Shown: positions 463 through 46,230 of the stretch, piece after piece
Layout: every line of letters begins with the position of its first letter
Position numbering within the stretch: position 1 is the stretch's first letter
IMG/VR virus record: IMGVR_UViG_3300031957_002643
Span: 62,001 to 126,000 of that record
Reading direction: 5' to 3' (one strand)
Length of the DNA: 64,000 nucleotides
Translations under genes and position numbers: made by a program
The notes under the pieces: model-generated
Database searches by the model: none
What the model saw: only the letters and a program-made list of their open reading frames with translations
Told to the model about the DNA's origin: nothing

Positions 463-732
463 TTATTCTTGAGCGCAAATAGGATTTCCGCTTTCATCTA
501 ATCTTGCATGAATTGCAATAGAGTAAGAGTCTTGAAGTATGAAATATTGGCATCCGTTATCTAGGTCAGTCATTATACTAACATCCAAAAAACTATACGG
601 ATCATCGAACGCATGAGAAAGTTCAACGCGCCGAACATAATTCTCGGTTTCGGTACTTGTTACGAAAATTCGATTTGGGTCTTCATAACAAGCACTTAAA
701 AGGATGCACAGGGATAATAGCAAATATTTCAT
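463..732 (-). CDS. small lipoprotein
   Basis: Signal peptide with lipobox LSA-C (MKYLLLSLCILLSAC). Confidence 0.7.
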   Translation of the reverse strand: MKYLLLSLCILLSACYEDPNRIFVTSTETENYVRRVELSHAFDDPYSFLDVSIMTDLDNGCQYFILQDSYSIAIHARLDESGNPICAQE

Positions 733-1436
733 TATAATTCTCTTTCGATCTCTACAACTCTATCTAGTCCCAAAGCGAACTCAAATACACGAGTCTCTTC
801 GGAATAATCGTTGCGGATCGACATGGACGCGATTTCTCTCCAACCTTTTTTGGTATGTGCTTCAAGGTCCAGTGTGCTTTCTGAATAGCTTGGCAGTCGA
901 TCAGATTCAACAACACGAATTTTCTTGCCAAGAATTCTGGCAAGCATCGGTTCGACCTCCTTGATCACTGCATCACGATAGTCGGCCTTGGTTCCAACAG
1001 AATAGATACATTGCCATTCTGCTTGATAGAATTCATTAAAGCGAAGCTTGGATGGAGATGCACCATCAGCTTTCTCACGTCTAAAGCTTTTGCCAACCTG
1101 ATACACACAGAATGGGAGCTTTGCACGCTTGTTTGTTTTTTCCAAATGACGTGCAGCGGTATATGATGATGCGGTTGTTTCGCCACGCAAAACAAGTTGC
1201 TCACCAGCCGCTTCGTGGTTGGTTTCGAAAATATCATCACCAGTATATTCGGGCGAAACAAATGAGCGAGGCGTAAGAATTGGCCCTTCGATCTGGAAAA
1301 ACTCCCATGCAGGATTTTTGGCAAGGAGTGCTTTTTTAATCATGAAATTCGTTCTGGAAGAAATCATATCACGCACAAGGATTTCTTCTTCTGACCAGAA
1401 ACGAAGTCCGTCAGTTGGGTATAATGCAGTGCTCAT
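732..1436 (-). CDS. class II aminoacyl-tRNA synthetase catalytic domain, GlyRS(alpha2)-like, no anticodon-binding domain
   Basis: LRGETT (cf. LRPETA), motif 2 QVGKSFRRE...LRFNEFYQAEWQ, motif 3 EFALGLDR at the extreme C-terminus. Confidence 0.8.
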   Translation of the reverse strand: MSTALYPTDGLRFWSEEEILVRDMISSRTNFMIKKALLAKNPAWEFFQIEGPILTPRSFVSPEYTGDDIFETNHEAAGEQLVLRGETTASSYTAARHLEKTNKRAKLPFCVYQVGKSFRREKADGASPSKLRFNEFYQAEWQCIYSVGTKADYRDAVIKEVEPMLARILGKKIRVVESDRLPSYSESTLDLEAHTKKGWREIASMSIRNDYSEETRVFEFALGLDRVVEIEREL

Positions 1437-2713: not shown

Positions 2714-3010
2714 TTACAATGAGTATTTAGCACTGTGTGCTGTTTCAGTCAAGCTGACAAGAAGAGCCTTCAAATTTGGCGCGATGCCTGCGATCTTATT
2801 AAGCAAGTCTAACTGTGCCGCCTTGATCATGTTCTCAGACAAAATTGATACACTAAGAGTTTCGCCATAACCCGACTGAATAATTTCGTTATAAACTCTT
2901 GTGATGGTTTCTTGACTGATCGCAATCCCCTCATTACTCACATCATATTCAAATTTCAATGTTTGATCATCATCAAACGAGAACTTGCACATGTATGCCG
3001 AAGCAGTCAT
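2714..3010 (-). CDS. hypothetical protein
   Basis: 98-aa ORF with AGGA RBS, in a tightly packed operon. Confidence 0.65.
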   Translation of the reverse strand: MTASAYMCKFSFDDDQTLKFEYDVSNEGIAISQETITRVYNEIIQSGYGETLSVSILSENMIKAAQLDLLNKIAGIAPNLKALLVSLTETAHSAKYSL

Positions 3011-3020
3011 CGGTTAATCC

Positions 3021-3245
3021 TTAAACTGTGAAGGACAAGAGCAGCAATACAGTTGCCCATCCTAATTTGAAGAAGGCATGCATTGTTCTGAATCGGTCAT
3101 AAGACCCACAAACATTTAATGCTTCTCTTTCGCTGCCTGCACGTTTTACGATGTATTTCCATGCAGTCAAATCACTGACCAAAATGTATCTCCAAACAAC
3201 GAAGATACAAATTGCCCAAACCGTGTAGTACCAAAAAGTGCTCAT
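3021..3245 (-). CDS. small membrane protein (two TM segments)
   Basis: Hydrophobic N- and C-terminal stretches. Confidence 0.6.
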   Translation of the reverse strand: MSTFWYYTVWAICIFVVWRYILVSDLTAWKYIVKRAGSEREALNVCGSYDRFRTMHAFFKLGWATVLLLLSFTV

Positions 3246-3308
3246 GCATCTTTGGTATCAGGGGGTTCACCATATTGCAACCCCCTGATACTAAAATCAG
3301 CAGATCGC

Positions 3309-3542
3309 TTAGGCGTAATGCGGAAGCGTATAAACTGCGACAGGATAGCCACGAGTGTTGTTACGAGTCGTATTCGTAACAATGGTGCCATTATTGACCA
3401 TCTCAGAAAGACGGGTGGACACCGTGCCACGGTTCAATTCGTAACGATTTACGATTTCCTGACAGGTGCGGCCACGGCCACGAGCGATGGTGAGTTCAGA
3501 AATGATGCGATCCGCAACAGAGTTGATAGTTGATTTTGCCAT
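3309..3542 (-). CDS. winged helix-turn-helix DNA-binding protein
   Basis: TCQEIVNRYELNRGTVSTRLSEMVNNG followed by a beta-wing; AAGGAG RBS. Confidence 0.75.
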   Translation of the reverse strand: MAKSTINSVADRIISELTIARGRGRTCQEIVNRYELNRGTVSTRLSEMVNNGTIVTNTTRNNTRGYPVAVYTLPHYA

Positions 3543-3577
3543 GATAATCTCCTTTAGACTAAATCAAATGCTTGAGA

Positions 3578-4804
3578 TCACATCATAGTACAATCGTGCG
3601 CGGTTTTCACATCACACGCGCGGTCTCTGATATTTTTTGCAGCATTTAAATCTGCATTTTCAGAATGACCACATGAAACACAGTTGAAACTGGATTGGGA
3701 CTTGCGGTTCTCTTTAGCAATATGGCCACAGGCCGAACACTGTTGAGACGTGAACTTTGCTGATACCTCGATAACAGAGCCACCCATAGGTTCTGTCTTG
3801 TATTTTAGCTGTTGTTTAATCGTGTACAAACCGGGCCGCAAAAGTTCACGGTTCAGTCCAGACTTTGCTTTCACGTTCTTTCCCGGTTCTTCAACGGTGC
3901 CTTTTGCCGATTTGGTCATGTTTTTTAACTTCAAATCTTCTACCGCAAAAGTTTTGTTCTTTTTAACCAGTGCAGCCGTGATCTGATGTCGAGATGCCTG
4001 AGTTGCACGTGTTTTGCGCGAATTCAGCTTTCTCTTTTCTACCAAGACTTTCTTGCGTCTATTAGAACCTTTTTTCGCGCGAGACAGCTTGCGTTGTGAC
4101 TGTTTAATACGGGCGTCGAGAACTTCGTCTTTATGGATTTGGTAAACATCACCATCAGATGTCATGATGGTTTTGTTGATACCCATATCAATTCCAATGA
4201 TCTCTTGTGAATGTGGAATCACTGGTTTTGTGACTGTGATTGTTTCAGTCACCGCCAAATGCCATGTTTCTGCTGCCGGGTCATAAACAATACGAGCATT
4301 CGCACCAAGTGAACCTTTGATTTTGGTCCACTTCTTATATTTCACCCATCCTAATTTTGGAATCTTGATACTGTTTTGTCCGAATCTAACATAAACGGTT
4401 TGGCCGCGCGCCTTGCTCACACCATTAATGCGAATATAAATGCCAAATTTATCAAAATACTCTCGTTTGGTAGGATATTTTGCTTTCAATTTGGGATTGA
4501 AGAAATTAGAACGTGCTTGCTCTAGGTCACTCCATGCAGTAAGAATTGAATCTGACGGGGCTTCACGAAGCCATTCGTTGCCATCTTTCTTCTTATATGC
4601 AGTGATGTCAGAAGATTTTAGCGACAGGTATTTGCCCTTACGTTGATCTTCCGGCAAGGGCAAAATCGTATCACGATAATGTTGGTCGTATACATCTAAG
4701 AAATGATTATAGATGTGGCGACATGCGCCTCTCCATTTGAACAATGTTTTTTCTTGTTCGGGAGATGGATACAATGGGAATTTGATACCACGACTGATTT
4801 GCAT
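3578..4804 (-). CDS. tnpB: CRISPR-associated TnpB/Cas12f-like RNA-guided endonuclease (408 aa)
   Basis: N-terminal HTH (KFPLYPSPEQ...GACRHIYN), RuvC-I IGIDMG, RuvC-II AVEDL, zinc finger CSACG/CVSCG, RuvC-III NADLNAAKNI. Confidence 0.93.
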   Translation of the reverse strand: MQISRGIKFPLYPSPEQEKTLFKWRGACRHIYNHFLDVYDQHYRDTILPLPEDQRKGKYLSLKSSDITAYKKKDGNEWLREAPSDSILTAWSDLEQARSNFFNPKLKAKYPTKREYFDKFGIYIRINGVSKARGQTVYVRFGQNSIKIPKLGWVKYKKWTKIKGSLGANARIVYDPAAETWHLAVTETITVTKPVIPHSQEIIGIDMGINKTIMTSDGDVYQIHKDEVLDARIKQSQRKLSRAKKGSNRRKKVLVEKRKLNSRKTRATQASRHQITAALVKKNKTFAVEDLKLKNMTKSAKGTVEEPGKNVKAKSGLNRELLRPGLYTIKQQLKYKTEPMGGSVIEVSAKFTSQQCSACGHIAKENRKSQSSFNCVSCGHSENADLNAAKNIRDRACDVKTAHDCTMM

Positions 4805-4822
4805 TGTTCTTCTTCCAGATAT

Positions 4823-5252
4823 GTTTCAGTTATCATACAAACCAATAGCTGCCCGATCCTATCACCGAAGACAGACTGCTAGGGCTGTTTCAGTTACCAT
4901 ACAAACCAATGGTTACTCGAACAGAACGTGCTTCGCTTCTCGGTGGAGTACTGTTTCAGTTACCATACAAACCAATGGTTACTCGAACTGCTGGACCGCC
5001 ATACTTCGTTTCGCGCTCGTTTCAGTTACCATACAAACCAATGGTTACTCGAACCAACATCAACCGATCTTCATACTCGAACCAGTTTCAGTTACCATAC
5101 AAACCAATGGTTGCTCGAACTTGTTCAAGAAATTGTGTGACCGGATGTAAGTTCCAGTTACCATACAAACCAATGGTTACTTGAACGGTCCTCGAAGTCG
5201 AACCACGGGGTCACATGTTCCAGTTACCATACAAACCAATGGTTACTTGAAC
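4823..5252 (-). CRISPR. CRISPR array: 7 repeats of 36 nt, 6 spacers (one of 28 nt, five of 30 nt)
   Basis: Plus-strand repeat GTTTCAGTTACCATACAAACCAATGGTTACTCGAAC starts at 4823 (6 mismatches), 4887, 4953, 5019, 5085, 5151 and 5217, with unique spacers. Minus orientation is inferred from the degenerate end repeat, the GAAAC 3' end and the promoter. Confidence 0.97.
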
Positions 5253-5480
5253 TGAAACCATAGCATCTCACTAGAAACATTCACGAAACTAGCTATGTAG
5301 CAACCATTAATATGGTAATCGAGCGGATCACAAGGACCTTCCGTGCTCATTTTAACGCTTCATTTGAAAGGCTTCCACCATCTTGTATCATGTTGCCATA
5401 ACCAATCCGGCTTCCACAAATCATCCACGTCTATGACGATCTGAAACAACCGCCATGTGTTCGTGTTGGTGAACACGAAT
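5253..5480 (-). ncRNA. putative tracrRNA/leader scaffold with anti-repeat
   Basis: Non-coding; 5299-5318 AGCAACCATT-AA-TATGGTAA matches two blocks of the reverse-complement repeat; hairpin TTCGTGTT-GGTG-AACACGAA at about 5460-5479. Confidence 0.55.
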
Positions 5481-5482
5481 GC

Positions 5483-5510
5483 ATAATGGTATATTTTTTT
5501 CATTAGTCAA
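5483..5510 (-). promoter_or_regulatory. putative sigma70 promoter for leader-array-tnpB
   Basis: TTGACT-16nt-CATTAT on the minus strand. Confidence 0.5.
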
Positions 5511-5543
5511 CGAGAAAATGCACAATAAATACCTCTGACGCAT

Positions 5544-6479
5544 ATGGAGCATTTTATGTCAGCTAAGCAGCAAAATCCACTATTGGACGATCTAGACAAT
5601 TTACCTCACATCACAATCACCTTGCCATCAAAGGGATTATTCTATGATGAGGATATGTTTGTAGAAGGAACCGATCCTACTGAATTGGAGGTTCATCCAT
5701 TTACGATGTGGGAAGAGGTTCATCATAGTAATCCGTTTGCCATCATGAGTGGCAAGGCTACTCGCAAAATGGTGAATACCGTTGCACCTGAGATCAAGAA
5801 TCCTGATGGTCTATGTTCTTATGATGTTGATATTCTAATGCTCGCGGGCCGAATGGCTTCTTATGGCGACAAAATGAAAATCACATTGACCTGTGGTAAT
5901 CCCGATCATGTTCGAGAAGTCGAAGAGAATGGTCAAAAGAAAAAGGTCAAATGCGAATCTAAAACGGATATGGATGTCAATATTCGCGAATTGATCAATG
6001 GTTATCCGATGATCGAAAATACGGATGATTGGAATGTGGAATTGCCAAATGGGCAAAAGGTCACGTTCCGACCAACATTGTATAATGATATGTTGAGTGC
6101 AATGAAAATTGGTGTGTCTCAGGAGAAGATCAATCAGATTATCAGAACCATGAAGGATTTGCCTGAAGAAAAGATATTCGAACTATCTGACCAAAGTGTT
6201 GATAACTTGATGAATGTGAAATTGGTCACGACTGTTTCAAGTATTAAATCGGTCATCACATCTGATGGTTCTAAAACGATTAAAGATCGGGACATGATTG
6301 TGCAGTGGTTGAGTCGTCTGAATGCCGATTACATCGATATTATCCAAGACAAGTTGGACGAATTGTCGGCACCATTCGAAAACACTGGTCGCGTTTCATA
6401 TGTGTGCCCTGAATGCGGATACGAAAACAAAGGCATTAATCTGGTTCAGGATCAATCGCGTTTTTTTACTCGCGGCTAA
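5544..6479 (+). CDS. T4 gp26/gp51-like baseplate hub or tail assembly chaperone
   Basis: ITLPSKGLFY, DVDILMLAGRMASYGD, C-terminal CPECG...FF; lies upstream of the tape measure; start probably 5556. Confidence 0.8.
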   Translation: MEHFMSAKQQNPLLDDLDNLPHITITLPSKGLFYDEDMFVEGTDPTELEVHPFTMWEEVHHSNPFAIMSGKATRKMVNTVAPEIKNPDGLCSYDVDILMLAGRMASYGDKMKITLTCGNPDHVREVEENGQKKKVKCESKTDMDVNIRELINGYPMIENTDDWNVELPNGQKVTFRPTLYNDMLSAMKIGVSQEKINQIIRTMKDLPEEKIFELSDQSVDNLMNVKLVTTVSSIKSVITSDGSKTIKDRDMIVQWLSRLNADYIDIIQDKLDELSAPFENTGRVSYVCPECGYENKGINLVQDQSRFFTRG

Positions 6480-6718
6480 GAGAAGCCGATACCCCGCAAG
6501 AAGTTTATAAAATAATCGAAGACTCTTTTAAAGACACTGATAAACTAGTTGACTCTTTTGCAGAAATCGCTATAATATCAAAGGGAGGTATTACTTACGC
6601 TGAACTTAAGCAGATGCCGCCACGAGAGTTCTTGGTTGTCCAAAAGGCACTATCTAGATATCTCAAGGCAATGGCAAAAGCTAACGGTGCAAAAGATACC
6701 TTCGAGATTGGAGGCTGA
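6461..6718 (+). CDS. -1 frameshift extension of the tail chaperone
   Basis: T TTT TTT at 6461-6467; the -1 frame is open for 83 codons (YSRLREAD...KGGITYAELKQMPPREF...GG*) with no early start codon. Confidence 0.75.
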   Translation, partial: FFYSRLREADTPQEVYKIIEDSFKDTDKLVDSFAEIAIISKGGITYAELKQMPPREFLVVQKALSRYLKAMAKANGAKDTFEIGG

Positions 6719-6719
6719 T

Positions 6720-6863
6720 ATGCTGTCTTGGTTTGGAATTTCATCGAATACTGCGTACTTCGCATGGTGCGCACCGTTTCTTCTGATTTATGCCTTTTGG
6801 CATCTGATGCAAATCGGGCGTCAAATGGAACTCGAAGAAGCTGCGAAGAAAGAAGAACAGTAA
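6720..6863 (+). CDS. 47-aa membrane protein
   Basis: GGAGG RBS, then MLSWFG...; one TM segment and a charged tail. Confidence 0.6.
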   Translation: MLSWFGISSNTAYFAWCAPFLLIYAFWHLMQIGRQMELEEAAKKEEQ

Positions 6864-6884
6864 TTTCTTTAGATAAATAGCTGT

Positions 6885-9278
6885 ATGGCTATTTCTGATA
6901 AAGACTTACGAGAACTCGCACAAGCTATGCAAGAAGTAATCGAGAGCAATAAAAAAGCTCTCGATAGGGTTTCCGATGGTCTTTCACAAATTGCTGAAGG
7001 CATGAAAGACGAAAGTCTAAAGTCAGACAAATCTGGCAACAATGCCAAAAATGCAAAGACCGATGATGACGGACAGGGAATTCGTCTTCAATTCAGCAAA
7101 GAGAATATCGAACAATTAGGTGAATCCATCGGTCGTCACATCGCACGTAATGGTGGCATGTCTGGTGAAGGCGGTGGTGAAGGCGGTGGTGGTGAACCTG
7201 CTGGTGGAAGAAGTGCCGCTGAAGCTGCCCAGCAAGCTAAGAACGTTTCAAACATCACCGGTCTACAAGAAGATTTGATCAAACAATTAGCGAAGTTTGG
7301 TGATAATCTTCAAGAAGATATTCAACAGTATACGATCAGACAGATGCAGAGCGTTGTTCGCCAGATAACAACTGCGATGTCTGAATTCTTTTCAGGACAG
7401 GATGCTATTCGCGGGTTCACTGATAGGTTCGAACTGGCATTGGATTCTACGTCCAGAAATCTTGGAAGTTTCGTTGATGCACTGCATCATGACTTCACAT
7501 TAGTACGAATGTCATTCCGCGAAACCATGAGATCGATCACGGACGATTTGTCATCTGGTGGTCGTGCTTTCGCTATATTCGGCGGAACTATGGAAGAATA
7601 TTCCGAAGAACTTAGAAGCTTGAGACAAAATATTAATCAGGGCGATGTCGATATGTTCAGAACCATGGCGCTGGCTGAACAAAATGATTACCTTAACAAG
7701 ATGTACCAAACCATGGTCTCTCAAGGGATCACAGAGCGGTTGAATTCTGAAGAAGTTCGCAATTACGCGCGCAATCAATACATCGCATTGACAGATATTC
7801 AGAATCTTACAGGCTTGAGTCTAAAAGAGCTTCAAGAAATGAATAGTGCCAACCAAGTTGTAATTGATGAACTGGTTGCGCGTGGTAGGTTCACAGAAGA
7901 ACAGGGCGCAGAATTGACTGCCGCTACAACCGCTATCACTGCGGTGATGCCAGAGGAATTGAGAGGCTTATTCAATCAGGGTCTTCAGCAGGGCATTGCA
8001 CCGGCACAGATTGCCTTCATGGACAACAATGCTGCGACCATGGCAAATCTTGGTAATGCAATCGATGCCATGGAAGCCGCTATTTCTAATGGAATGACTG
8101 CCGATGAGGCTCGCGGCATTTTCATGAGCACCATTGATTGGGACGCATTGAACAATATTCCCTTGACCGCAATCGATGGACAAATGCAATCGATGCTTAA
8201 TAGTTTCAGAGCATCTTACGATGAACGTGAAGCCCAACGTAATGGTTTCCTTTCTGAAATGAGTAGACGGTTCGATGCATTATTTGCGGAATTCCCGGTG
8301 CTTGGCGTTATCAGAGATGTTGGTTCGGGAATCTTTGGTGTCTTCAACTCAATCGCCGCACTAAATGCAGCGATTATAGCAAATACCACCGCAGTAACCG
8401 CAAATACTGCTTCTCAACTTGGCGGATTGTTTGGCGGTCGAGGATTATTCAGGGGATTATTCCGGGCAACCGGTATCTCTGGTGCTATGTCTGGTATCAT
8501 GTCTGCTGCTAGGGGATTAGGAAAAATTCTCCCCGGTCTTCTCAGATTCGGTACTGTTGTAGCTGGTGCGATAAGCATCATCACAGATGGTATTGATTTG
8601 TTTAGAAACTTCGGAAATATGGATTGGACCGAAGTGGGCGGATCAATCCTTACCATGATTGGGAAGGGTCTTCTAATAGCCGGTGCAGTTTTGGTTGGTG
8701 GTATTCCGGGTGCAGTTATCGCGGCCATTGGTGCGGCCTTTTTTGGACTTGATGCTCTGTTGGGAGGCCGGTTGACCGATTGGGTTGAAGATGGTTTTAC
8801 GTGGTTATTGAGACAAGCTGGAAACATTGGAGTGATGCTATGGAATGGTTTCAAAGCATACATGAGTTTTGTTACAGCACCATATAGATTCCTTTTCACT
8901 AAGATCGGAGAGTTCTTTACATGGCTATGGGAAAGTTCGCCAATCAGATGGATTAGACAAAGATTAGGTCTCATGAATGACACCGCAGCCGCAGAAACCC
9001 AATCTGCTACTGATCAAATCAATCGCGAGACACGACAGATTGTTCAAAGAACTGGTGAATTGAGAACTGCCGAAGCTAGAAGATCAGAAGCAGCACTTGA
9101 TAGGGAAGCAGTCGAGGCATCACTATCGCCACGCGATGACACTAGAGAACGCGATGAAGACAGAAGAGAACGTGCCAGACAGACTCGTTTATTAGAAGAA
9201 ATTGCATCAGCAAGTCGTGGTACTAGAGAAAACACAAGACCAAGTACCGTATATAATACAGAAGCAGTAGCATATTGA
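6885..9278 (+). CDS. tape measure-like protein
   Basis: Long helical Ala/Gly-rich protein with hydrophobic segments and spaced Trp/Phe; follows the frameshifted chaperone. Confidence 0.7.
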   Translation: MAISDKDLRELAQAMQEVIESNKKALDRVSDGLSQIAEGMKDESLKSDKSGNNAKNAKTDDDGQGIRLQFSKENIEQLGESIGRHIARNGGMSGEGGGEGGGGEPAGGRSAAEAAQQAKNVSNITGLQEDLIKQLAKFGDNLQEDIQQYTIRQMQSVVRQITTAMSEFFSGQDAIRGFTDRFELALDSTSRNLGSFVDALHHDFTLVRMSFRETMRSITDDLSSGGRAFAIFGGTMEEYSEELRSLRQNINQGDVDMFRTMALAEQNDYLNKMYQTMVSQGITERLNSEEVRNYARNQYIALTDIQNLTGLSLKELQEMNSANQVVIDELVARGRFTEEQGAELTAATTAITAVMPEELRGLFNQGLQQGIAPAQIAFMDNNAATMANLGNAIDAMEAAISNGMTADEARGIFMSTIDWDALNNIPLTAIDGQMQSMLNSFRASYDEREAQRNGFLSEMSRRFDALFAEFPVLGVIRDVGSGIFGVFNSIAALNAAIIANTTAVTANTASQLGGLFGGRGLFRGLFRATGISGAMSGIMSAARGLGKILPGLLRFGTVVAGAISIITDGIDLFRNFGNMDWTEVGGSILTMIGKGLLIAGAVLVGGIPGAVIAAIGAAFFGLDALLGGRLTDWVEDGFTWLLRQAGNIGVMLWNGFKAYMSFVTAPYRFLFTKIGEFFTWLWESSPIRWIRQRLGLMNDTAAAETQSATDQINRETRQIVQRTGELRTAEARRSEAALDREAVEASLSPRDDTRERDEDRRERARQTRLLEEIASASRGTRENTRPSTVYNTEAVAY

Positions 9279-11618: not shown

Positions 11619-12308
11619 ATGGCTAGAAAATCTGCATTTAGCGAAAATATTATTCGCACCGCTGAAAAAATGATTCAGCTATCAGAGTCTTCCGACTCTG
11701 CTGTTCGTGATGCCTTGGCAGAAGAAATCGAACAAGAATTTACTCGTGCAACAATCACAATCGCTCGTCAAGTTGCTGAAGAGCTTGGTCTTTATGAGAA
11801 TGAAGGCGTCGAAAGCTATTTGAGTGATGAAGATGACGACTTCGAAGGCGAAAGCGATGATGTCGCAATCGATGACGAAGATGAAGGTGAACTTCTTTTA
11901 GGTGATGACGAGTTTGATGACGAAGGTGATGACTTGGACGATGCCCAAGACGAAATCGACGGTGAACTTCTACAGATGGACGACGATGAAGACGAAGCAC
12001 CATCTGATGAGGGCGACGATGAAGATTTCGGCGCTGATGACGAAGGTGAAGAGTCTGACGAAGGTGACGACGAAGACTTCGACATCGAGCTTCCATCTTT
12101 TGATGATGAAGGTGACGAAGAAGGTGATGACGAATTCGGTGAATTTGATGACGAAGGTGAAGAGTCTGATGACGAAGGTGACGATGAAATCGATGCCGAC
12201 GACGAAGGTTCTGATGCTCTAGACATTGATGGCGTCGATGAAGCTCTATCACAGCTTTCTTCTGATGAAACCATCGAAGAAGACGACTTGGATTTGGATA
12301 ACTTCTAA
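11619..12308 (+). CDS. highly acidic prohead core protein
   Basis: Asp/Glu-rich low-complexity protein between portal and protease; GGAG RBS. Confidence 0.7.
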   Translation: MARKSAFSENIIRTAEKMIQLSESSDSAVRDALAEEIEQEFTRATITIARQVAEELGLYENEGVESYLSDEDDDFEGESDDVAIDDEDEGELLLGDDEFDDEGDDLDDAQDEIDGELLQMDDDEDEAPSDEGDDEDFGADDEGEESDEGDDEDFDIELPSFDDEGDEEGDDEFGEFDDEGEESDDEGDDEIDADDEGSDALDIDGVDEALSQLSSDETIEEDDLDLDNF

Positions 12309-15354: not shown

Positions 15355-16953
15355 TTACATATCAGAGATCGATGCGTTGATCTCTTCTTCCTTGCGACGA
15401 ACAGGCTCCACAACCTTTTCCTTGGCGGTATTCATACCAGAGATGGTCGCAACCGTATCCTGCTGAGAATGGTCGGCCAGCGCACGATGGTCAGTACGCT
15501 TCTTCTCGTATCCCAGAGCTTTGTTGCGGGCAGTGATGAGAGATTCAGCAACACTGCGCTGCATGTTTTCAAGCTCTTCACGAGTTTCCAGACGGAGAAC
15601 ACGTGCACGTTCGGTAGTTTCAATACTGGCCATGGTGGAGTTGATAACTGCCTCGTTTGCGATGCGGATAGCATCCTTAGAGATAATCGATTTCTCGACG
15701 TTCTCATAAGCCTTCTTCTGCATTTCAGCAATCTTCGTAGAACCATCACGCACCAGCGTGTCAGTGAACGAATTGACGGCTTCCATGATGGTGAGAACAT
15801 CTTGGGTCTTGGATGCTTCCACAATCTGCGCCAGTGTGGTTTTCCACAGCGGAACAGTATGGGTCATCGTCTGGTTGATCTTGTTGATCATTTGCATGTC
15901 GATATCCTTCATATTACGAAGTTTCGACATGTCCTGTGCGGCCAGCGTTTGCGTTTCGACCAGTGCCATACGCTGGCGATCCAGAGCGTCACGCTGCTTC
16001 ACAAGGTCTTCCAGCATATACGGGAGGCCCTTATCTTCAGGAGTAGCTTCGATTTGATTGTTCATCTCATCGATTTCAAGCTGCTTCTGTTCGATAATTC
16101 GATCCAGTGCACAGATATGCATATAGACTTCACGATAGAGCGTCAGAGTGCCTTCATAGAGGTCTTTGATATTCTCCATCGAGTCGATCAGATCACGATG
16201 GTGCTCCATGAGCTTGTCTTGGACCGAGTCGATATGATCGCTGACATCATGAAAGCCATCAATGAAATGCTTCAGCGGTTGGGCAGTCTTGCGAAGCACG
16301 AGACGTTCGAACCAGTTCGGATCATCATCAGGATTATACCCCTGTGCCGTTGACACAAGTTCCTGAAGGTCTTCACGAATGATGCTGAGGTCACGGGTCT
16401 TCACCTTGTCGAGAAGATTGTCCGAGACCGCACTTGTCTTCTTTTGGGCGCTGATGCCAAAAGACATAACCGAAACCATATCAGCCGGATCGAGGCGATT
16501 GACAAGTTCGTTGACAATCTCTTCGTCTTCCTCGGTCAGCTTGTTGCTCATAAGCGCACTGGTCCGACGATTCTTCGGGATTTGGACAATGCCACGTCCC
16601 ACATCCGAATCTTCAAGTGTCGCACTCTTCATGGTTCTCTCCAATTGTTGTTCCTCGTTCTGATGCCGTTCATCAGAATAATCAAAATCTGTATTGTCGG
16701 TACTTTTGGCGTGATAACCACCGCCTCCAAAATCACCTTCCACAGCTTTCCTCATAGCTCTTTCTTCGTCGTTGTTTAGTGGCCGACGATAGCCATACTT
16801 GTCTTCCAATCGATATCTGAAGGAATAGTTTTTGTACTCGCGCTTAAGGTCTCTAATGTATGAAAGATATGTGTTTCTGTCATCCATCATCATATTCTCA
16901 AGCAGCGTTATTTCCTTCATCATTTTCAATTTGTGCACGAACCCGCTCCGCAA
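15355..16953 (-). CDS. telA: toxic anion resistance protein (TelA/YaaN family); start uncertain, probably 16632
   Basis: MSFGISAQKK...SDNLLDKVK, INKINQTMTHTVPLWKTTL; long coiled coil. Confidence 0.8.
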   Translation of the reverse strand: MRSGFVHKLKMMKEITLLENMMMDDRNTYLSYIRDLKREYKNYSFRYRLEDKYGYRRPLNNDEERAMRKAVEGDFGGGGYHAKSTDNTDFDYSDERHQNEEQQLERTMKSATLEDSDVGRGIVQIPKNRRTSALMSNKLTEEDEEIVNELVNRLDPADMVSVMSFGISAQKKTSAVSDNLLDKVKTRDLSIIREDLQELVSTAQGYNPDDDPNWFERLVLRKTAQPLKHFIDGFHDVSDHIDSVQDKLMEHHRDLIDSMENIKDLYEGTLTLYREVYMHICALDRIIEQKQLEIDEMNNQIEATPEDKGLPYMLEDLVKQRDALDRQRMALVETQTLAAQDMSKLRNMKDIDMQMINKINQTMTHTVPLWKTTLAQIVEASKTQDVLTIMEAVNSFTDTLVRDGSTKIAEMQKKAYENVEKSIISKDAIRIANEAVINSTMASIETTERARVLRLETREELENMQRSVAESLITARNKALGYEKKRTDHRALADHSQQDTVATISGMNTAKEKVVEPVRRKEEEINASISDM

Positions 16954-34398: not shown

Positions 34399-36954
34399 TT
34401 AACCTACGAAGTTAAAGTCCAAGCTGTCACTAACAGCATTATATACGATCTCAAATTTCTTATTATTTGAAGTATCGTCAATACTTACCTTCTCAGTCTG
34501 AACTTCATTATCAATATGTGCCGTTGTAGCAACATCAAGGGATGATCCAACATTCAAAGCACCAGAAAATTGCCAATACCCGTCATCTGCATCGAATCTC
34601 AAATCTTTCGCTGTATCAAATGCACCACCATCATATGGGATTATTGAGAAACGGTCTTCTACGGTGTCATGCACCATTTTTACAGCACCCTCACCAGAAC
34701 CCCATGTTATCTCAATTCCAGTGGTGATAACATCATTTGCATCTGATCGAAGAAATTGAGTTGAGTCCAAGGAGTCCAAGGTATCGGCATCAATACCATT
34801 GCCAGAACCTTCATCGGCAGTTGTTAGGACCCGAGACCCATTTGCTCTGACTTCGCCTGTCCCACCCGTAGTCAACAATATATGGCCATTGGTGATTTCA
34901 TTTTCGATGGTTAAATCATTGCTTGCTGCACTAACGTAACCAATACGACCTGAGCGCGTGGATAATGATGCATCTCTCGCATAAAATCCAAAATACACAT
35001 GATCACTAGAACCATCCGTTCTAAAGCGAACACCTATTGGTCCACCATCGAAATAGTTGTCTTCAGTAAAAGTATTAAGTGAAACAAGACGAGAATACCG
35101 TGTATCATTGTAATCACGATCACCAACATGAGAACCTAATGTTGGGTCAGTTGGTGATGATAGGAAACCAGACAACGTGACATTTCCAGTAACGTTTAAT
35201 GCACCACCAATATTTAACTGGTCATCAAACGCCCATGTTCCGTCATCCGCATCAAAGAAGAATTCTTTTCCGGTATCATATGCACCACCATCATATGGTC
35301 GGAAATATGTCGCATTCTGCGCGGCGACATGCTCGATGGACACGGCACCTTCGGCATTCCCACCGAAGAATAGTGTAATATCGGAAACGATTGTTGAATC
35401 ATTGTCACGTCTTACAAAGACACCACTGTTCAAACCATCCAGAAGATCGGCATCAAGTCCTGATCCTGATCCATCAACCGTTAAGAGTTTGGCCAACACA
35501 TCAGCAGCCGTGTAGGACGCTGCTGGAAGGTAATACGATCCCTCTTGGCCATCTAGGGTATCAGCATCCAATCCGTTACCAGAGCCTTCGTCAGCAACAG
35601 TGAGAACACGATTACCACTAATGACAAGCTGCTCTCCCGAAATATCAAATGAGAATACGGTAGTGTACCCTGAATTTCTAAATGCGATACCAGAATCATT
35701 TAATGACGTGATGGTTAACGCATTAGTATGATCAATCCACAATGCACCACCCGAAGAACGATACAATTTGGTACCATCATCAGCGCCCAGATTGTTTTTG
35801 AAAATAATTTCAACCGCATTGTCTATATTAAAATCACCAGTAAGAGTATCACCAGAAGCATTCAAATATCGAGCATCATTATATCCCCTATCACCAATAT
35901 GATCATCTGATGTTGGATCACCCACATTGCCGATAAGCGAACCGCTTGGCGTCCAATAATCATTGGTTTCGTCCCAAAGCCAAGTTACATTGGTTTCGGT
36001 TCCGCGCTCAACTTCTAAGCCTGAGTTTTCTGTCGGCGTTCCAGTAACGTCATTGTTGAGAAGAATGATGTTGTCACCGGTAGAAATAGTCGTGGTATCA
36101 ACAAAGGTGGTCGATCCATTAAACGTCCAATCACCAGTGATTGTTGCATTCTCGTCTTTTCGTGGAAATGCGCTTGCATGATATGTATCGAGAGTATCAG
36201 CATCAAGACCCGATCCTGATCCATCATTGGCAGATGTCCAAACGGTTGCGGCAGAGCCACCTTCAAACAATTCCAATGAATAATCATTCGCGCCATTTCT
36301 CGTGAACCTCATTATAAGGTCTGAAGAATCAGAAGAATATTTTAAAGTATGTTGGTTAGAACCATCTAGACCAGAAAGTCTAGTAGCAGTATTTGATAAG
36401 GTAACTTGTCCAGAAAATTGCCAGTTTCCCGTAATTCCAGCATTTTCCGATTTGCGAGCAAATGCAGATGATGTGTAACCATCCAGAGTATCAGCATCAA
36501 GTCCATTGCCTGATCCAGTATCAGCAGTTGTTAGAATACGACTGCCACCAAGATAACCTTCACCAGCATTGTCCATTCTGAAACCAACATCTTTGGTTCC
36601 ACCAATGGTAATGTTTAGAGAACCATCCGACCCATCAATCCAAAATCGCTTGTCGGTAAACGTTGAACCATCGTAAAAGGCTAGACCACTCGTGTTTCCA
36701 TAATTGGTTAGATGTAAATCGCCATAAACCGTTCCAGAATAATCTGAACCGATGATCAAATCATCCCTTGCCTGAATTCGTTTCGTGACATCAAGAATGT
36801 TATTCGTTTCGGAAATGTTGACGAGAAGTCCGTCAGTCGTTCCGACAAATTGAATGTCACCATTGGATGCGACTTGAAGTTCTGTGGTCGAAGATACGGA
36901 ACCAGAGAATTCAATTTTAGCCTGACCCGGAATTATTAGAATATCGTTAGCCAT
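34399..36954 (-). CDS. tail fibre protein with G(S/N)G(L/I)DADxLD repeats
   Basis: Five such motifs; SGLEVERG module. Confidence 0.8.
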   Translation of the reverse strand: MANDILIIPGQAKIEFSGSVSSTTELQVASNGDIQFVGTTDGLLVNISETNNILDVTKRIQARDDLIIGSDYSGTVYGDLHLTNYGNTSGLAFYDGSTFTDKRFWIDGSDGSLNITIGGTKDVGFRMDNAGEGYLGGSRILTTADTGSGNGLDADTLDGYTSSAFARKSENAGITGNWQFSGQVTLSNTATRLSGLDGSNQHTLKYSSDSSDLIMRFTRNGANDYSLELFEGGSAATVWTSANDGSGSGLDADTLDTYHASAFPRKDENATITGDWTFNGSTTFVDTTTISTGDNIILLNNDVTGTPTENSGLEVERGTETNVTWLWDETNDYWTPSGSLIGNVGDPTSDDHIGDRGYNDARYLNASGDTLTGDFNIDNAVEIIFKNNLGADDGTKLYRSSGGALWIDHTNALTITSLNDSGIAFRNSGYTTVFSFDISGEQLVISGNRVLTVADEGSGNGLDADTLDGQEGSYYLPAASYTAADVLAKLLTVDGSGSGLDADLLDGLNSGVFVRRDNDSTIVSDITLFFGGNAEGAVSIEHVAAQNATYFRPYDGGAYDTGKEFFFDADDGTWAFDDQLNIGGALNVTGNVTLSGFLSSPTDPTLGSHVGDRDYNDTRYSRLVSLNTFTEDNYFDGGPIGVRFRTDGSSDHVYFGFYARDASLSTRSGRIGYVSAASNDLTIENEITNGHILLTTGGTGEVRANGSRVLTTADEGSGNGIDADTLDSLDSTQFLRSDANDVITTGIEITWGSGEGAVKMVHDTVEDRFSIIPYDGGAFDTAKDLRFDADDGYWQFSGALNVGSSLDVATTAHIDNEVQTEKVSIDDTSNNKKFEIVYNAVSDSLDFNFVG

Positions 36955-39900: not shown

Positions 39901-42900
39901 TCATTTCACCTTTTTGTATTCCACCTCTAATTTGTCTACATCTTTTCTCTCTGCAAACACATGATAGAAGAAATCCCAATTCTTGATTAGATTCTTGCTC
40001 TTTATATAGACCCTATTGTTTTCGATCTTCTCGACATAAATGTCTTGTGCCTTGCCCATTGGTGTTAGTGAAACAGTGATACTATCCGCATCAACTAGTT
40101 CGATCCAATAATCTGGAAGCTCGATTACATGTGACTTTGAGCGACCACGAACATAGACGCCATTTTCTGGTCCTTCCAATGAACCATATCTTAATTTGTA
40201 GTTCTCTTTGGTCGGGTGATCAATAACGAATGATTTTTGAGTTGCATTCAGTGCGCCCGTGATCGTAATACCGGTGCTGTCTACTTCTGCAATGTTCGTG
40301 CTATTAATGATTAGATACAAGGTGTTATCTGCACCTTGGCCAATACCTGTGACCGGATTTGACCTATTCGGAACAAGTGTTGGATTGGTTGATGATGGTG
40401 TCTCGTTAAGAAGTGCCGGGCCTTTTGTTGCCTGCATTTCGAAGCCAGCGGCGGACAAAATTGCCACCGAAGAACCATCAATAGCCATTCCTAAATTGCC
40501 TGTTGCGGCATAAAAACCAGTATCAGGATGATCCTGTAGCGAAACCCCCGGAGCAGCAGCCGATCCATCAGATGCTAGAATTTGACCAGCAACACCAATT
40601 TTTCCAATGAACCAAGAATTCTCTTGAACTTCAAGATTACCAGTCTTGGTCACTACGTTACTATATGATCCGGCACTGCCACGGATTTCGAGAACGTCAG
40701 TATTTGTCCAATATCCGGTTCTCGTGTCATCACCAGTATTATCATACGTGAATACTGCCGGATCATCGATCATACCAATAGTTGAACCAAACCTTGGTGA
40801 GATAGAGTAATTCGTGATGATGGTGTCAGTTATAATGTTGGCACCCTCAATACCATCAACCGTATCGGCATCTATGCCATTGCCGGAACCTTCGTCTCCA
40901 ACAGTTAGAATTCTACTGCTGGAAACAAATGCTTGACCCGTTGAGGTATTCACTTCAAAAATAGAAGTATCGGCTGAATCAGTTACTTTGAATAATGTAT
41001 CTGCTGCATTCTTTACAAGTATATTTCCATTATTTTGAATTAGAAGATCGTCGCCCGTTGTTCTCTTGATGAAGGCATCGGTTGCTGGAACAGAGCTTTT
41101 GAACACCAAGCTCACATCGTTTGCAAAATTCTTGTTTGCTGTTACATCATTACCAGTGGCATCCAATTGGAAATATCGAGCATCATTGTAGTCTCTATTG
41201 CCAACATGGGTCCCGGCAGACGGGTTCGTTGATGCTGTGATCGCTGCTGTGAATGAAGCTGTACCAGTGACATTCAATGCACCGCCGATGTCTAGGCGAT
41301 CTTTGAATTCCCAATATCCAAGATCAGCATCATACGTGAAATCGCGAGTAGGCTGATATGTTCCACCATCGTATGGTGTCATTGCAAATCTATGTTCGGC
41401 ATCGTCATGAAGGAAGCGAATTGTCCCCTCATTCGCACCGAAATAAAGGATGACACCCGTATCAATATTTGAAGTAGCATCCGTTCTCACGAATTGGGAT
41501 GCGTGAATACTATCAACCGTGTCAGCATCGATACCATTACCAGAACCTTCGTCATTTGTCGTCAGGATACGATAATAATTTGATCCATCATTTGTGAGAG
41601 ACCAATAATCAGATGTCTCATTCCACAATACTGAAACATTTGCAGATGTACCGCGTTCTACTTCAATACCAGCATCTTGTGATGGCGTGCCAGCTTCGTC
41701 AGAATTCAAGACAATGATGTTGTCGCCAATTTCCACAGTGTTAGAATTGACAGTTGTCGTAGTTCCTTGAACTGTCAAATTACCAGCAACAGTAACCCCT
41801 GTCCCGTTCACAGTGAGTGCAGCAGTTCCATCACTCCTGATGATTGTTTCAGAACGACCAATTTCCAAAACAGTTGCAGCAGTATCACCAGAATTTTCAG
41901 CTTGGATCAATAATTTACCAAGATGATTTCGGTTGATCATATAAGTGTTGTTGTCACCGGAATCATAATAGATGGAGAAATCCGTATCATCACCAAAGCT
42001 CAACTGGTTGTCATCGTAATATGTGTGTGATGCTTCAATTGCTGAAAATGAAATACGACTGACTAGATCAGACCCATCGATCCCATCCAAAGTATCAGCA
42101 TCAATACCATTACCTGATCCATAATCGGCAGTCGTTACAATTCCAAGATCGCTCTTAAGATTTGTGAATGATCTCTTTCTCGCAGTTCCACCTGTTGAAA
42201 AATCTGAAAACAAGAAGAGGTCTTGTACGGTTGCAGCCTGATCCGTGATTTCCGATGGATCAAATGACAGCGTGAAGTTTTGATTTAGTTGTCCAGAACC
42301 GATACTAGCAGCCAAACCGAGACCCGGTGTGATGGTTCTGGTTGACGGAACACTGTTGGTGTTTCTCGCTACCGGTGAAACAACAAGATCAGTAATTGTT
42401 CCTGTTGAAAGATTGGTTGACCACACGTAAACGTAATTCGTTGCGGTTTCATTCACCAAGGATGCTGATGCGAAGAAAATTCTCCACTGATTGGAACCAT
42501 CACCATTGAAAGCTCCAAGGTTAGTTGCTGTGATGGCTGAAGTACCAACTGCAAGATTGACACTCGAACCCATTCCAGTGTGATTGATTAGGATTTCTAC
42601 ACCATCAGCCGTATCACTTTGAACCGGATCGAATGCGAACGAGATTGCACCCGTTACTGTCGTCTGTGTTGGAACCGCATATGAACCACTAAATGATGCA
42701 ATGACCGCATCATTACCTGCTGGACCGGTTGGACCTGTAGCACCGGCAACACCATCACTTCCTGCTGGACCGGTTGGACCGGTTGGGCCTTGAGCACCGT
42801 CATTACCTGCTGGTCCCGTTGGTCCTGTCGCCCCTGTCGCACCATCATCACCGACAATAGAAGTCGCTGCGCCCCACGCGCCTGCGGTCTTAGGTCCATA

Positions 42901-45663
42901 TAGATCATAAGTGTCTGTATCTAAATAGAAATCACCATCCACACCATCAGCAACATCATCTGGTGCGCCAGAACCATTGAGCACGGTTCTACCATCCACA
43001 CCATCATTACCTGCTGGACCAGCAATGCCCTGTGGTCCAATTGGACCGGTTGGACCGGTTGGACCCTCAGCACCGGTTGGACCGGTTGGGCCAGTTGGAC
43101 CCTGAATACCTTGTTCGCCCTGAGCGCCCTGAACTCCTGCTGGACCGGTTGGGCCAGTTGGACCTTGAGCGCCCTGCGGACCAGTTGGACCCTGAATACC
43201 TTGTTCACCCTGAATACCTTGGATGCCTTGAATGCCCTGCGGACCGGTTGGACCGGTTGGTCCTTGGATGCCTTGTTCGCCTTGTGGACCGGTTGGACCG
43301 GTTGGGCCGGTTGGACCCGGAAGTCCTGAAGATGAGACGTTTAGAATTTGAATGGCATCATCAGCATCTTTAAAGTAGATATTGCCATCTTTATAGTTCA
43401 AGAACAGCTCACCATAGGCCAGATCACCAGCCGCAGGCTGAACACCCTGCAAGCCGCTGCTCTTGACGGTAATAAGCATGTCATCACCATCAGCAATCAA
43501 CCCATCAAGTGATAGACTTGCCTGATTGGTAGTTGCCAGATCACCAAGTTCCAATGCAGTTCTAGCATCTGCCGCAGTAGCGGTTCCTGCTAGAGTTCGA
43601 CCAAAAGCTTTCAAGTCATACAAGGCGGCAGTATTAAGTGCAGTGGTGTATATTGCTTTATCGGCGGCAGTTGTAAGCCCGGAAATACTTTGCAGCAATG
43701 CGCTGTATGCTTGAACATCTGAACCAATAGCAACACCAAGATTAGTTCTTGCTGAATTTTTATTAGACAAATCGTCAAGGTTTAATGATGCTGTCAGTTT
43801 TCCTGCAAGAGAATTGGTAATGGTCGTTGCAAAGTTTGGATCATCACCCAACGCAGCAGCAAGTTCATTTAGTGTATCTAATGCAGATGGTGCACCACCT
43901 AACAGATTGGAAATTGCCGTGGAAACAAATGCGGTTGTTGCAAGTTGATCTGTATTAGTACCAGCTAAAGCTGTTGGTGCTTCAGGCTCGCCTGTGAAAA
44001 CGGGAGTATCCAGTCTGGCAATAGAAGATGGAATATCACCATCTACCAATGTTGTACCAGATGATACACGTCCATATGAGTCAACCGCAACTTTGGTATA
44101 TGTTCCCGGTGTACCAATTGTTGGAAGATCGCCTGATTGAAGTGCTGCACCCGCAGTAACAATACCACGGTCGTTAACAGTTACCTTGCCATAGGTGCCA
44201 GCAGAAACGCCAGATGCAGGAAGATCAGAATTTGAAAGCGTTGTCGCGCTCGTTACGATACCTTTGACGTTGACAGTTAACTTTGTGTATGTGCCAGCGG
44301 TGACACCGGAATCTGGAAGTCCTTCATTATCCAACGCCTGACCATCGGTAACACGTCCATATTGGTCAACGGTCAATGAATTATAGGTGCCCGGTGTAAC
44401 AATACTTGGAAGCAGTGTTGCATCGAATGATTGTGCAGCCGTAATGATACCTTTGTCGTTAACAGTGACCGCACCATATGTTCCCGGCGTGACTCCTGAA
44501 ACTGGCAAGTCTGAATTGACAAGCTGTCCCGCACTCACAGCACGACCAGTTGTATCCAATTCGATTTTTGTGTAGGTTCCAGCAGAAAGACCAACAATAG
44601 TTGGGAAATCCGCAGTTTCAAGAGAACTAGTTCCGGTAACAATACCTTTTGAATTGACGACCAGTTTTGCATACGTTCCCGGCGTGACTCCTGAATCTGG
44701 AAGATCAGAATTGATTAAAGTGGTTCCAGCAGTTGCCCTACCATATGTGTCAACAGTGAGCTTGGTATATGTTCCGGCAGAAATTGCTGTTGGCGGCAAG
44801 TCACTGTCTTGAATATTAGCAACGGCAGTAATGATACCTTTATTGTTTACGGTGACTTTAGAATATGTACCCGGTGTAATAGCTTGTGCGGCAATCGCAA
44901 TGTCATAACTTGAACCAGCACCATTATCCAACAGATCGAAGTCAGCAGAAAAATTAATGCTTCTTTCGTTATTGAGCGTTGCGGTATTTCCAATCGTGAG
45001 AACAGGAATATCAATGAACGGATCAGTGATATTTTTGACCCATTCAGTCGTTGGAACAACCCTACTATCTTCACCAGCCGCAGGCGTGTCCGTTAAAATG
45101 AGTGTTGAATCAATACTATCGTCAAAGGTTTTGTTGCCTCTGATAAACTGATCTCCAACAAGTGCGACAAATCCTTCAGTTAAGGCTTCAGCCGGGTCCT
45201 TGTTCACCCAATTGGATGAAAGCGCGTCATAAACAAGAAGTTGCTTATCCCCAAGGGAAGTCAGATTGGTATCCGCAGCATCAGCGATAGATGCGGCTGG
45301 ACCCGCAGGACCGGCTGGACCCTGAATACCTTGTTCACCCTGATCACCCTGATCACCTGTTGGACCCAACAGGCTTGAAATGAAAACCCATTCACCATTC
45401 ACTCGGTAAAAAATTTCACCGGTTGACTTCTTTAGGTAATAATCGTCCTCATTGCCGACATTTGGATCAGGATCGGTATCACCATTGTACCATTTGGATG
45501 CAAGGTATGGATTTTGGGCACGAAGATAAATTGGAGGAAGATCAGGAAATGAAATCTTGGTACCAGCATTTTCGCCATCTCTGATATACTCGATGGTCAT
45601 ATCCTCGATGGAAAATGATGTGGAAGTTGTTCCTAATGTATTCGTTAAACGTGATTTAGTCAT
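39901..45663 (-). CDS. giant tail fibre (1920 aa) with collagen-like and [13 protein letters not shown] repeats
   Basis: Nine GTY-type repeats of about 33 aa, [27 protein letters not shown] tracts, C-terminal KSFVIDHP...GSLEGPE domain. Confidence 0.88.
42720..43320 (-). repeat. collagen-coding tandem repeats (GPTGPT/GIQG)
   Basis: Repeated ggaccggtt 9-mers inside the fibre gene. Confidence 0.9.
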
Positions 45664-45711: not shown

Positions 45712-46230
45712 TCAGTCGATTGAAATGACTATTCCATTTTGAATTGATATGGACTTACCGTCAGCAGTTTGAAAGCTACCGTTAATTCCCGAACCAATGT
45801 CCAATCCGGGCGCTCCTTGTGGTCCCTGTGGACCAATTGGACCAGTTGCACCTACGGGTCCTTGAATGCCTTGAAGTCCACGTGGTCCTTCTGGTCCATC
45901 CAAACCAATTCCAACTGGACCAACTGGTCCAGTTGGACCCATTGGTCCACCCATGAAACCTTCATTGTTCCAGTCCCCGATATTATCTTTCTGATAGAAT
46001 TGGCTTGTTTGTTTATCAAGATACAAATCGCCAGAATTGCCCTTGGAGTAATCTGGTGGACCGGAACCAATATGCCATTGTGTCGCCACCATTGGCTGGT
46101 CAAACCGAATTTTCACATCTTGTTTGTTTGGATATTTGAAAACAATTTGCTCACCATCTGTCGTGATGGTGAGTTTTCCTATTTTGAATGTTGGGCTTGT
46201 CGTGCCGGAAATACTAGAATTTGCGCTCAT
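45712..46230 (-). CDS. short collagen-like fibre protein
   Basis: G-X-Y tract; N-terminus paralogous to the downstream fibre. Confidence 0.8.

Follow-up and report, generated by a model that had tools for sequence, protein, structure and literature searches.

CRISPR arrays have been reported next to TnpB-like nucleases in phages (PMC12607003), and TranC systems are described in Jin et al. (Cell 2025, as cited in PMC13565253) as TnpB-sized, CRISPR-associated transposon-CRISPR intermediates. CauTranC9 is encoded by Caudoviricetes, shows no domain expansions and is accompanied by five repeats of 38 nt, and the proteins of TranC clade 9 average 414 aa (bioRxiv 10.64898/2026.03.27.714800).

Here we describe a short repeat array that, in our view, probably supplies the guides for a minimal type V-like system of TnpB origin, borne by a phage and of the TranC or V-U kind. 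The stretch of DNA analysed (the window, 64,000 nt) is taken from virus record IMGVR_UViG_3300031957_002643, a complete genome of 335,552 bp that has direct terminal repeats and comes from a seawater metagenome, and covers its bases 62,001-126,000. Our best reading is that the system is vertically inherited and adaptation-free within a group of T4-like jumbo phages, and has been deleted in some of their lineages.

Compared by description, the locus resembles CauTranC9 in its TnpB-sized nuclease (P0001, 408 aa), which is TnpB-like in fold and lacks both a REC/WED expansion and a long C-terminal domain, and in the short adjacent array (here 7 x 36 nt), encoded by a tailed phage and lacking associated adaptation genes. 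On this descriptive match it fits the TranC kind. Unlike in TranC, the array lies upstream, in the predicted 5' UTR of the nuclease gene, and a candidate anti-repeat is found in the leader rather than between gene and array, a layout that, judging from the loci compared, differs from that of the nearest relatives. The match of P0001 to the solved LaTranC is weak (E 3e-9, C-terminal part; TM 0.70/0.61).

The HTH, RuvC and zinc-ribbon architecture of P0001 and its catalytic triad are the same as in IS200/IS605 TnpB (ISDra2, ISFba1). Unlike these, the nuclease is present as a single copy linked to a multi-spacer array, with no TnpA and no recognisable right end or omega-RNA locus. With type V-F (Cas12f/Cas14) and V-U systems it has in common a miniature RuvC effector, 36-37-nt repeats, guides that would lie 3' of the repeat in the proposed orientation, and a likely need for a tracrRNA, whereas the Cas12f match is limited to the C-terminal RuvC half and cas1-cas2-cas4 are missing here. 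As a compact jumbo-phage array without an adaptation module and with a presumed role in inter-virus conflict, the locus is also reminiscent of huge-phage Cas-phi/Cas12j, Cas-lambda and virus-borne mini-arrays. Cas-phi and Cas-lambda, however, measure ~750 aa and match P0001 marginally (E 7e-6; TM ≤0.5), and orphan mini-arrays differ in that here an effector of its own adjoins the array.

The array and its phage genome

The source genome is that of a T4-like jumbo phage, in which portal, prohead protease, Gp23 capsid, baseplate and terminase genes were all found. Within ~2 kb of the array are genes for the TnpB-type nuclease, a 77-aa HTH-like protein and a T4-like baseplate protein (Table 1). 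Megablast of the locus against GenBank phages gave zero matches. The locus occurs in two sequencing runs of one study, both as Logan contigs and with no RNA run among them; in both, the array is identical and its depth flat.

Table 1. Features of the array-nuclease locus (window coordinates)
Feature	Position	Strand	Basis and remarks
77-aa winged-helix-like protein	3309..3542	(-)	Weak NCBIfam matches to small HTH regulators; neighbour, not demonstrably part of the system
408-aa TnpB-fold nuclease P0001	3578..4804	(-)	Pfam, NCBIfam, PDB sequence search, AlphaFold2 model
Terminal degenerate repeat (4823-4858) and oldest spacer (28 nt, 4859-4886)	4823..4886	(-)	
Six full 36-nt repeats and five 30-nt spacers	4887..5252	(-)	Starts 4887, 4953, 5019, 5085, 5151, 5217; leader-proximal end 5252
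Leader, possibly a tracrRNA-like scaffold	5253..5476	(-)	Three-way alignment with L013 and L018
Anti-repeat-like hairpin	5298..5323	(-)	Both repeat arms in reverse complement, 4-nt loop
Candidate sigma-70-type promoter (TTGACT, 16 nt, CATTAT)	5483..5510	(-)	Consensus scan, 9/12 matches; putative function

The six full repeats recur with a period of exactly 66 nt, in agreement with the 36-nt repeats and exact 30-nt spacers described in an earlier, sequence-only reading of this DNA. Chance falls far short of explaining six near-identical 36-mers that recur at an exact period. Three copies (4887, 4953 and 5019) are identical, that at 5085 has one private change, and those at 5151 and 5217 have T4>C and C32>T in common. 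The seventh, terminal copy carries 6 substitutions, clustered in its plus-strand 3' third; read on the minus strand, it has decayed over its 5' 12 nt, whereas its 3' 24 nt have undergone a single change. Its seven 36-nt repeats and six mutually unrelated spacers (28-30 nt) give the locus what is generically expected of a CRISPR array, namely near-identical repeats of 23-50 nt and unique spacers of similar length; no second such array is present in the 335,552-bp genome.

In RNAfold the whole repeat forms a 14+8+14 hairpin with two internal mismatches (-8.8 kcal/mol). The variant repeat of 5151 and 5217 is more stable (-10.6 to -10.8 kcal/mol) because U4.G33 becomes C4-G33, position 5/32 still being mismatched. 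Both the 14+8+14 fold and the two substitutions common to these copies, one of which improves pairing, had been noted in the sequence-only reading and hold up. At 4805-4858 (minus strand), the pseudo-spacer following the terminal repeat consists of the nuclease's own ribosome-binding region and start codon; terminal repeat and pseudo-spacer could represent an autoregulatory guide or plain decay.

Several other features of the window were recorded. Two tRNA-Arg(TCT) genes lie 300 nt apart on the minus strand (2328-2404 and 2631-2707). A 234-aa protein encoded at 732-1436 (minus strand) consists of a class II aminoacyl-tRNA synthetase core domain only (Pfam tRNA-synt_2b, 2d), and is adjoined by a GNAT acetyltransferase at 1442-1903. 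A strongly acidic protein of Asp/Glu-rich repeats (11619-12308, plus strand), whose gene is situated between those for the portal and the prohead protease, is probably a component of the prohead core or scaffold, and a TelA-like (toxic anion resistance) protein is encoded at 15355-16953 (minus strand), just after the major capsid gene and on the opposite strand. Long collagen-like Gly-X-Y triplet repeats occur in a 1,920-aa ORF (39901-45663, minus strand) and in the ORF at 45712-46230 (minus strand). The DNA repeat families of these ORFs lie at 42.7-43.3 kb and 45.3-45.9 kb, with ~190-nt repeated modules at 44.1-44.9 kb, and the ORF at 34399-36954 has repeat segments in common with them.

The adjoining TnpB-type nuclease

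On the minus strand, the ATG of the nuclease gene is located 18 nt from the last, degenerate repeat. P0001 matches the Pfam families HTH_OrfB_IS605, OrfB_IS605 and Cas12f1-like_TNB, and over its full length the NCBIfam model guided_TnpB (228.6 bits, cut-off 100). Scores against Cas12f2 (75 bits vs a cut-off of 450), C2c8 (98 vs 350) and the CasX model fall far below the cut-offs. In a PDB sequence search the best natural full-length match was ISDra2 TnpB (4e-28), and Cas12f (E 1e-17 or weaker) and LaTranC aligned to the C-terminal RuvC part only. The AlphaFold2 model (pLDDT 88.4) gave a consistent picture, with ISDra2 and ISFba1 TnpB as the best folds (TM 0.73-0.82), Cas12f at ~0.6 and LaTranC at 0.70/0.61. 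Putative RuvC residues D206, E289 and D385, together with a CxxC...CxxC zinc ribbon, are invariant across 40 homologues. By sequence and predicted structure, P0001 belongs over its full length to the TnpB family and fold, its RuvC triad is intact, and RNA-guided activity is predicted for it.

The sequence-only reading had assigned the array a type II or VI affinity on account of its 36/30 geometry. The gene that adjoins the array, however, encodes a TnpB/Cas12-family nuclease, and the complete 335.5-kb genome contains no match to the Cas9 REC lobe (Cas9_REC model). An array beside a TnpB relative on contig L104 also has the 36/30 geometry, which is therefore not diagnostic of type II or VI. 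Through the adjacent gene the array has in effect the type V association which that reading had named as speaking against its own assignment. Cas1, Cas2 and Cas4 were likewise absent from the complete genome at E ≤ 1.

No named Cas12 resembles P0001 as closely as transposon TnpBs do, and the protein could in principle act as a classical omega-RNA-guided nuclease with the scaffold in its own 3' end, the array being separate in function or a regulatory element of the 5' UTR. The succession of terminal repeat, nuclease ribosome-binding site and start codon would also suit a regulatory role. We consider this explanation very unlikely, because what lies downstream and around the gene is not what it calls for. 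The 77-aa protein, 81% identical to its counterpart in the related contig L010, is a real protein that begins 35 nt after the nuclease stop, and therefore leaves no room for a classical right-end omega-RNA; a gene is still found at the corresponding position in the sister phages L013 and L015, which lack the module. The hallmarks of IS200/IS605 transposons are missing, in that this is the only TnpB-type gene in the phage genome, no TnpA/Y1 transposase gene was found there, the next conserved gene is 35 nt away, and no conserved right-end-like RNA is recognisable. A scan of window positions 3000-7000 against Rfam (E ≤ 1) detected no CRISPR-DR and no TnpB-associated RNA family. An anti-repeat at the 3' end of the nuclease gene was found neither in this phage nor in L010, and P0001 and its closest homologue P0002 also lack the C-terminal tail that overlaps such an anti-repeat in the more distant relative L019.

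Leader, polarity and a candidate anti-repeat

Several observations support transcription of the array on the minus strand, with the leader beyond 5252. A decayed repeat and an off-size spacer occupy the gene-proximal end both here (the 4823 end) and in L010. The repeats keep one orientation with respect to the gene, also in L019 and L104 with their downstream arrays, and across lineages it is the 3' part of the repeat that varies least. In type V Cas12 systems the crRNA carries a repeat-derived 5' handle next to the guide, so that conservation of the 3' part of the repeat is expected. No promoter-like site was found upstream of the array on the plus strand, and the only suitably placed sigma-70-like site is that on the minus strand at 5483-5510, whose -35 hexamer is conserved in the related contig L018 and similar in L013. 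Since array and nuclease gene are separated by only 18 nt, there is no space for a separate nuclease promoter. The derived changes common to the two leader-proximal repeats fit at least one acquisition after those mutations arose. Growth polarity towards 5252, as proposed in the sequence-only reading, is thus backed, though indirectly, by the degenerate repeat and off-size spacer at 4823, by the candidate promoter beyond 5252 and by the derived leader-proximal substitutions.

The leader contains two non-coding blocks, at 5421-5447 and 5321-5362, that are conserved when this phage is aligned with L013 and L018. The first of these is interrupted in L018 by a 1-nt indel, which argues against coding. 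A 47-codon minus-strand frame (5363-5506) was rejected as a gene, being called in no source and broken by the L018 indel. An origin of the leader as a remnant of TnpB coding sequence was rejected for this phage and for L018; such a remnant exists in L013 only. The fold stability of the leader is ordinary (z = -0.23).

Within the leader, the hairpin at 5298-5323 suggests a tracrRNA-like anti-repeat in two lineages, albeit with a duplex energy of only marginal significance. In this phage, the duplex between the repeat and the element reaches -25.0 kcal/mol, a value equalled or exceeded by 11 of 300 whole-leader shuffles. The L018 repeat and L018 element form a duplex of -16.2 kcal/mol; the best site in the L018 leader is at -17.1, and 62/300 shuffles of that leader were as good, so that nominal significance is reached in this phage and not in L018. 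Cross pairs of repeat and element between this phage and L018 reach only -15.5 and -11.5 kcal/mol. Both arms of the leader element compensate for the mismatch in the repeat hairpin, which is A9/A28 here and T9/T28 in L018.

On the opposite side (5524-5531, plus strand), a ATAAATAC motif located ~25 nt ahead of the start of the baseplate gene is largely conserved in L013, L014, L015 and L018 and resembles the T4 late promoter TATAAATA. The array-nuclease unit (early) and the baseplate gene (late) would then be divergently transcribed.

Relatives, losses and the origin of the module

The closest homologue of P0001, P0002, is 58% identical and is encoded on a syntenic phage contig (L010/L011), where a 36-nt array is again found directly upstream of the gene, the contigs ending inside the array. 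Its repeat has diverged and keeps the same ends, GTT...CTGAAAC in gene orientation; in L010 the gene-proximal repeat is degenerate and the gene-proximal spacer measures only 19 nt. Contig L018 preserves the leader side of a P0002-type repeat beside the baseplate gene. Such adjacency could be mere block inheritance in syntenic phages. An association of effector and array with fixed repeat orientation recurs in L010/L011, L018, L019 and L104.

Among the more distant relatives, P0003 and P0004 form the next clade and are ~40% identical to P0001. In L019 they are accompanied by a related 36-nt repeat in the same orientation, which here lies downstream, starting 10 nt after the stop; the final 75 nt of the gene include a perfect anti-repeat of 12 nt. 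In L104 (P0012, 37%), the first repeat of a 36/30 array overlaps the stop codon (L104:1636-1876 and L104:1874-3250). Less regular repeats are present at the 3' end of the gene in L020 and L022, and none in the 208 nt remaining after the stop in L103. Arrays were found nearby in only 3 of 80 more distant IMG/VR relatives. A quick maximum-likelihood tree placed P0001 and four others of the seven array-associated proteins in a clade of 10 rows (SH-aLRT 96); P0012 belongs to its sister clade (SH-aLRT 94 for the join), apart from IS609-type TnpBs, and P0008 groups elsewhere.

Some of these relatives have further features of their own. The nuclease-plus-array module of L019 is flanked by ~45-nt imperfect direct repeats (L019:455-510 and L019:2168-2215), possibly a duplicated insertion site or the termini of a mobile cassette, and a phage-type integrase gene is located immediately beside the TnpB relative and array of L104. 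Two IMG/VR contigs contain arrays of 12-14 repeats (L088:3594-4452 and L092:1609-2612), with a 36-nt repeat ending GTTGAAGG and spacers of ~36-40 nt, downstream of a gene whose product matches P0001 residues 170-392 at 40% identity; these represent a different virus-borne type V-like system.

Two sister phages carry scars of the module. In L013 (L013:5625-5760), ~45 C-terminal nuclease codons are fused to the leader anti-repeat element, and in L015 (L015:7846-7985) only the last 28 nt of the nuclease gene remain, joined to the baseplate promoter region. The scars record independent deletions of the module. Having been lost in two lineages, the module is therefore dispensable. These losses, along with the degenerate terminal repeat, the 19-nt gene-proximal spacer of L010 and the failure to find targets, would suit a decaying relic, in which array and nuclease were once functional and are now neutral cargo heading for deletion as in the sister phages. 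We judge this unlikely in view of the intact ORF with all catalytic and zinc-binding residues conserved, of three identical repeats with no other full copy differing by more than 2 nt, and of the retention of the nuclease at 58% identity over a deep split, which implies long purifying selection.

The sequence-only reading had proposed that the array was captured from, and is still being extended by, a host type II-style Cas1-Cas2. Phage mini-arrays exploiting host Cas proteins are known, and on this account an orphan mini-array from a host type II (or VI-B) locus would be extended by host Cas1-Cas2 and used by host effectors, the TnpB gene being an unrelated IS passenger. The phage indeed has no adaptation genes, the uniform 30-nt spacers imply measured integration at some time, and the leader-proximal repeats have derived substitutions in common; a host adaptation module may be used in trans. 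Capture is nonetheless improbable, as its predicted source did not appear. The exact repeat 22-mer had zero matches in 185,579 species genomes, among which candidate host arrays were sought, the exact 24-mer had zero in IMG/VR, and a degenerate 36-mer spanning both phage repeat types had zero in species genomes, IMG/VR and JGI metagenome contigs; a conserved leader 23-mer was likewise found in no metagenome or viral contig. Related repeats occur instead beside related TnpB-type genes in unrelated contexts, always in gene orientation, and the nuclease gene is accompanied by neither TnpA nor IS hallmarks. Between the phage lineages, nuclease identity (58%) is close to that of the neighbouring baseplate protein (56-64%), a similarity in divergence that suggests vertical inheritance of a module old in the phage group, with no recent capture. 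No Cas9 REC lobe was matched in the genome, and ongoing extension is spoken against by the absence of Cas1, Cas2 and Cas4 from the phage and by an array that is invariant, at flat depth, in two runs.

The spacers gave little indication of what the array is directed against. No protospacers were found in the phage's own genome (≤7 mismatches), in GenBank phages (a single match at E = 2 being at chance level), in plasmids and the relatives' loci compared here, or in IMG/VR, which was scanned with 20-mers of the three leader-proximal spacers. Spacer GC averages ~51% vs 42% for the phage, a weak hint that the targets are foreign.

Direct observation covers how the locus is built, the family and fold to which P0001 belongs, the lack of Cas1/2/4 and TnpA, the conservation seen among relatives and the scars left by deletion. 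For the TnpB-derived, phage-borne guide system that we favour, we propose the following mechanism. The early sigma-70-type promoter near 5483-5510 would give rise to one minus-strand transcript, containing in order the leader (5476-5253), seven repeats and six spacers (5252-4823) and the nuclease mRNA (4804-3578). Processing would yield crRNAs in which the conserved 3' part of the repeat serves as 5' handle and precedes up to 30 nt of guide. The leader element at 5298-5323 may act as a tracrRNA-like anti-repeat, taking the place of the omega-RNA scaffold, which in relatives is encoded at the 3' end of the gene. So guided, the 408-aa RuvC nuclease would cut matching DNA next to a TAM/PAM, the targets most likely being competing phages or other foreign DNA.

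A more far-reaching version is conceivable, and we put it forward only tentatively. In it, an independent TnpB-to-CRISPR transition became fixed in a T4-like jumbo-phage lineage, with the scaffold moved from the 3' end of the gene to the leader upstream of the array. One early transcript would supply tracr-like RNA, guides and nuclease mRNA, making a self-contained, adaptation-free, ~2-kb RNA-guided weapon with a 408-aa effector of the smallest kind, and the terminal half-repeat would possibly place the nuclease start region as an autoregulatory pseudo-guide.

For the reading of such loci in general, a 36/30 repeat geometry is by itself no sign of type II or VI, and it is the neighbouring gene that decides. 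If functional, the system described here would be among the smallest natural CRISPR-type systems, at ~2 kb with a 408-aa effector, and would offer a compact editor candidate with an unusual guide layout, its array lying in the 5' UTR. From an evolutionary standpoint, a functional system would bear on the route from TnpB to CRISPR effectors, and on phages as vehicles for that transition.
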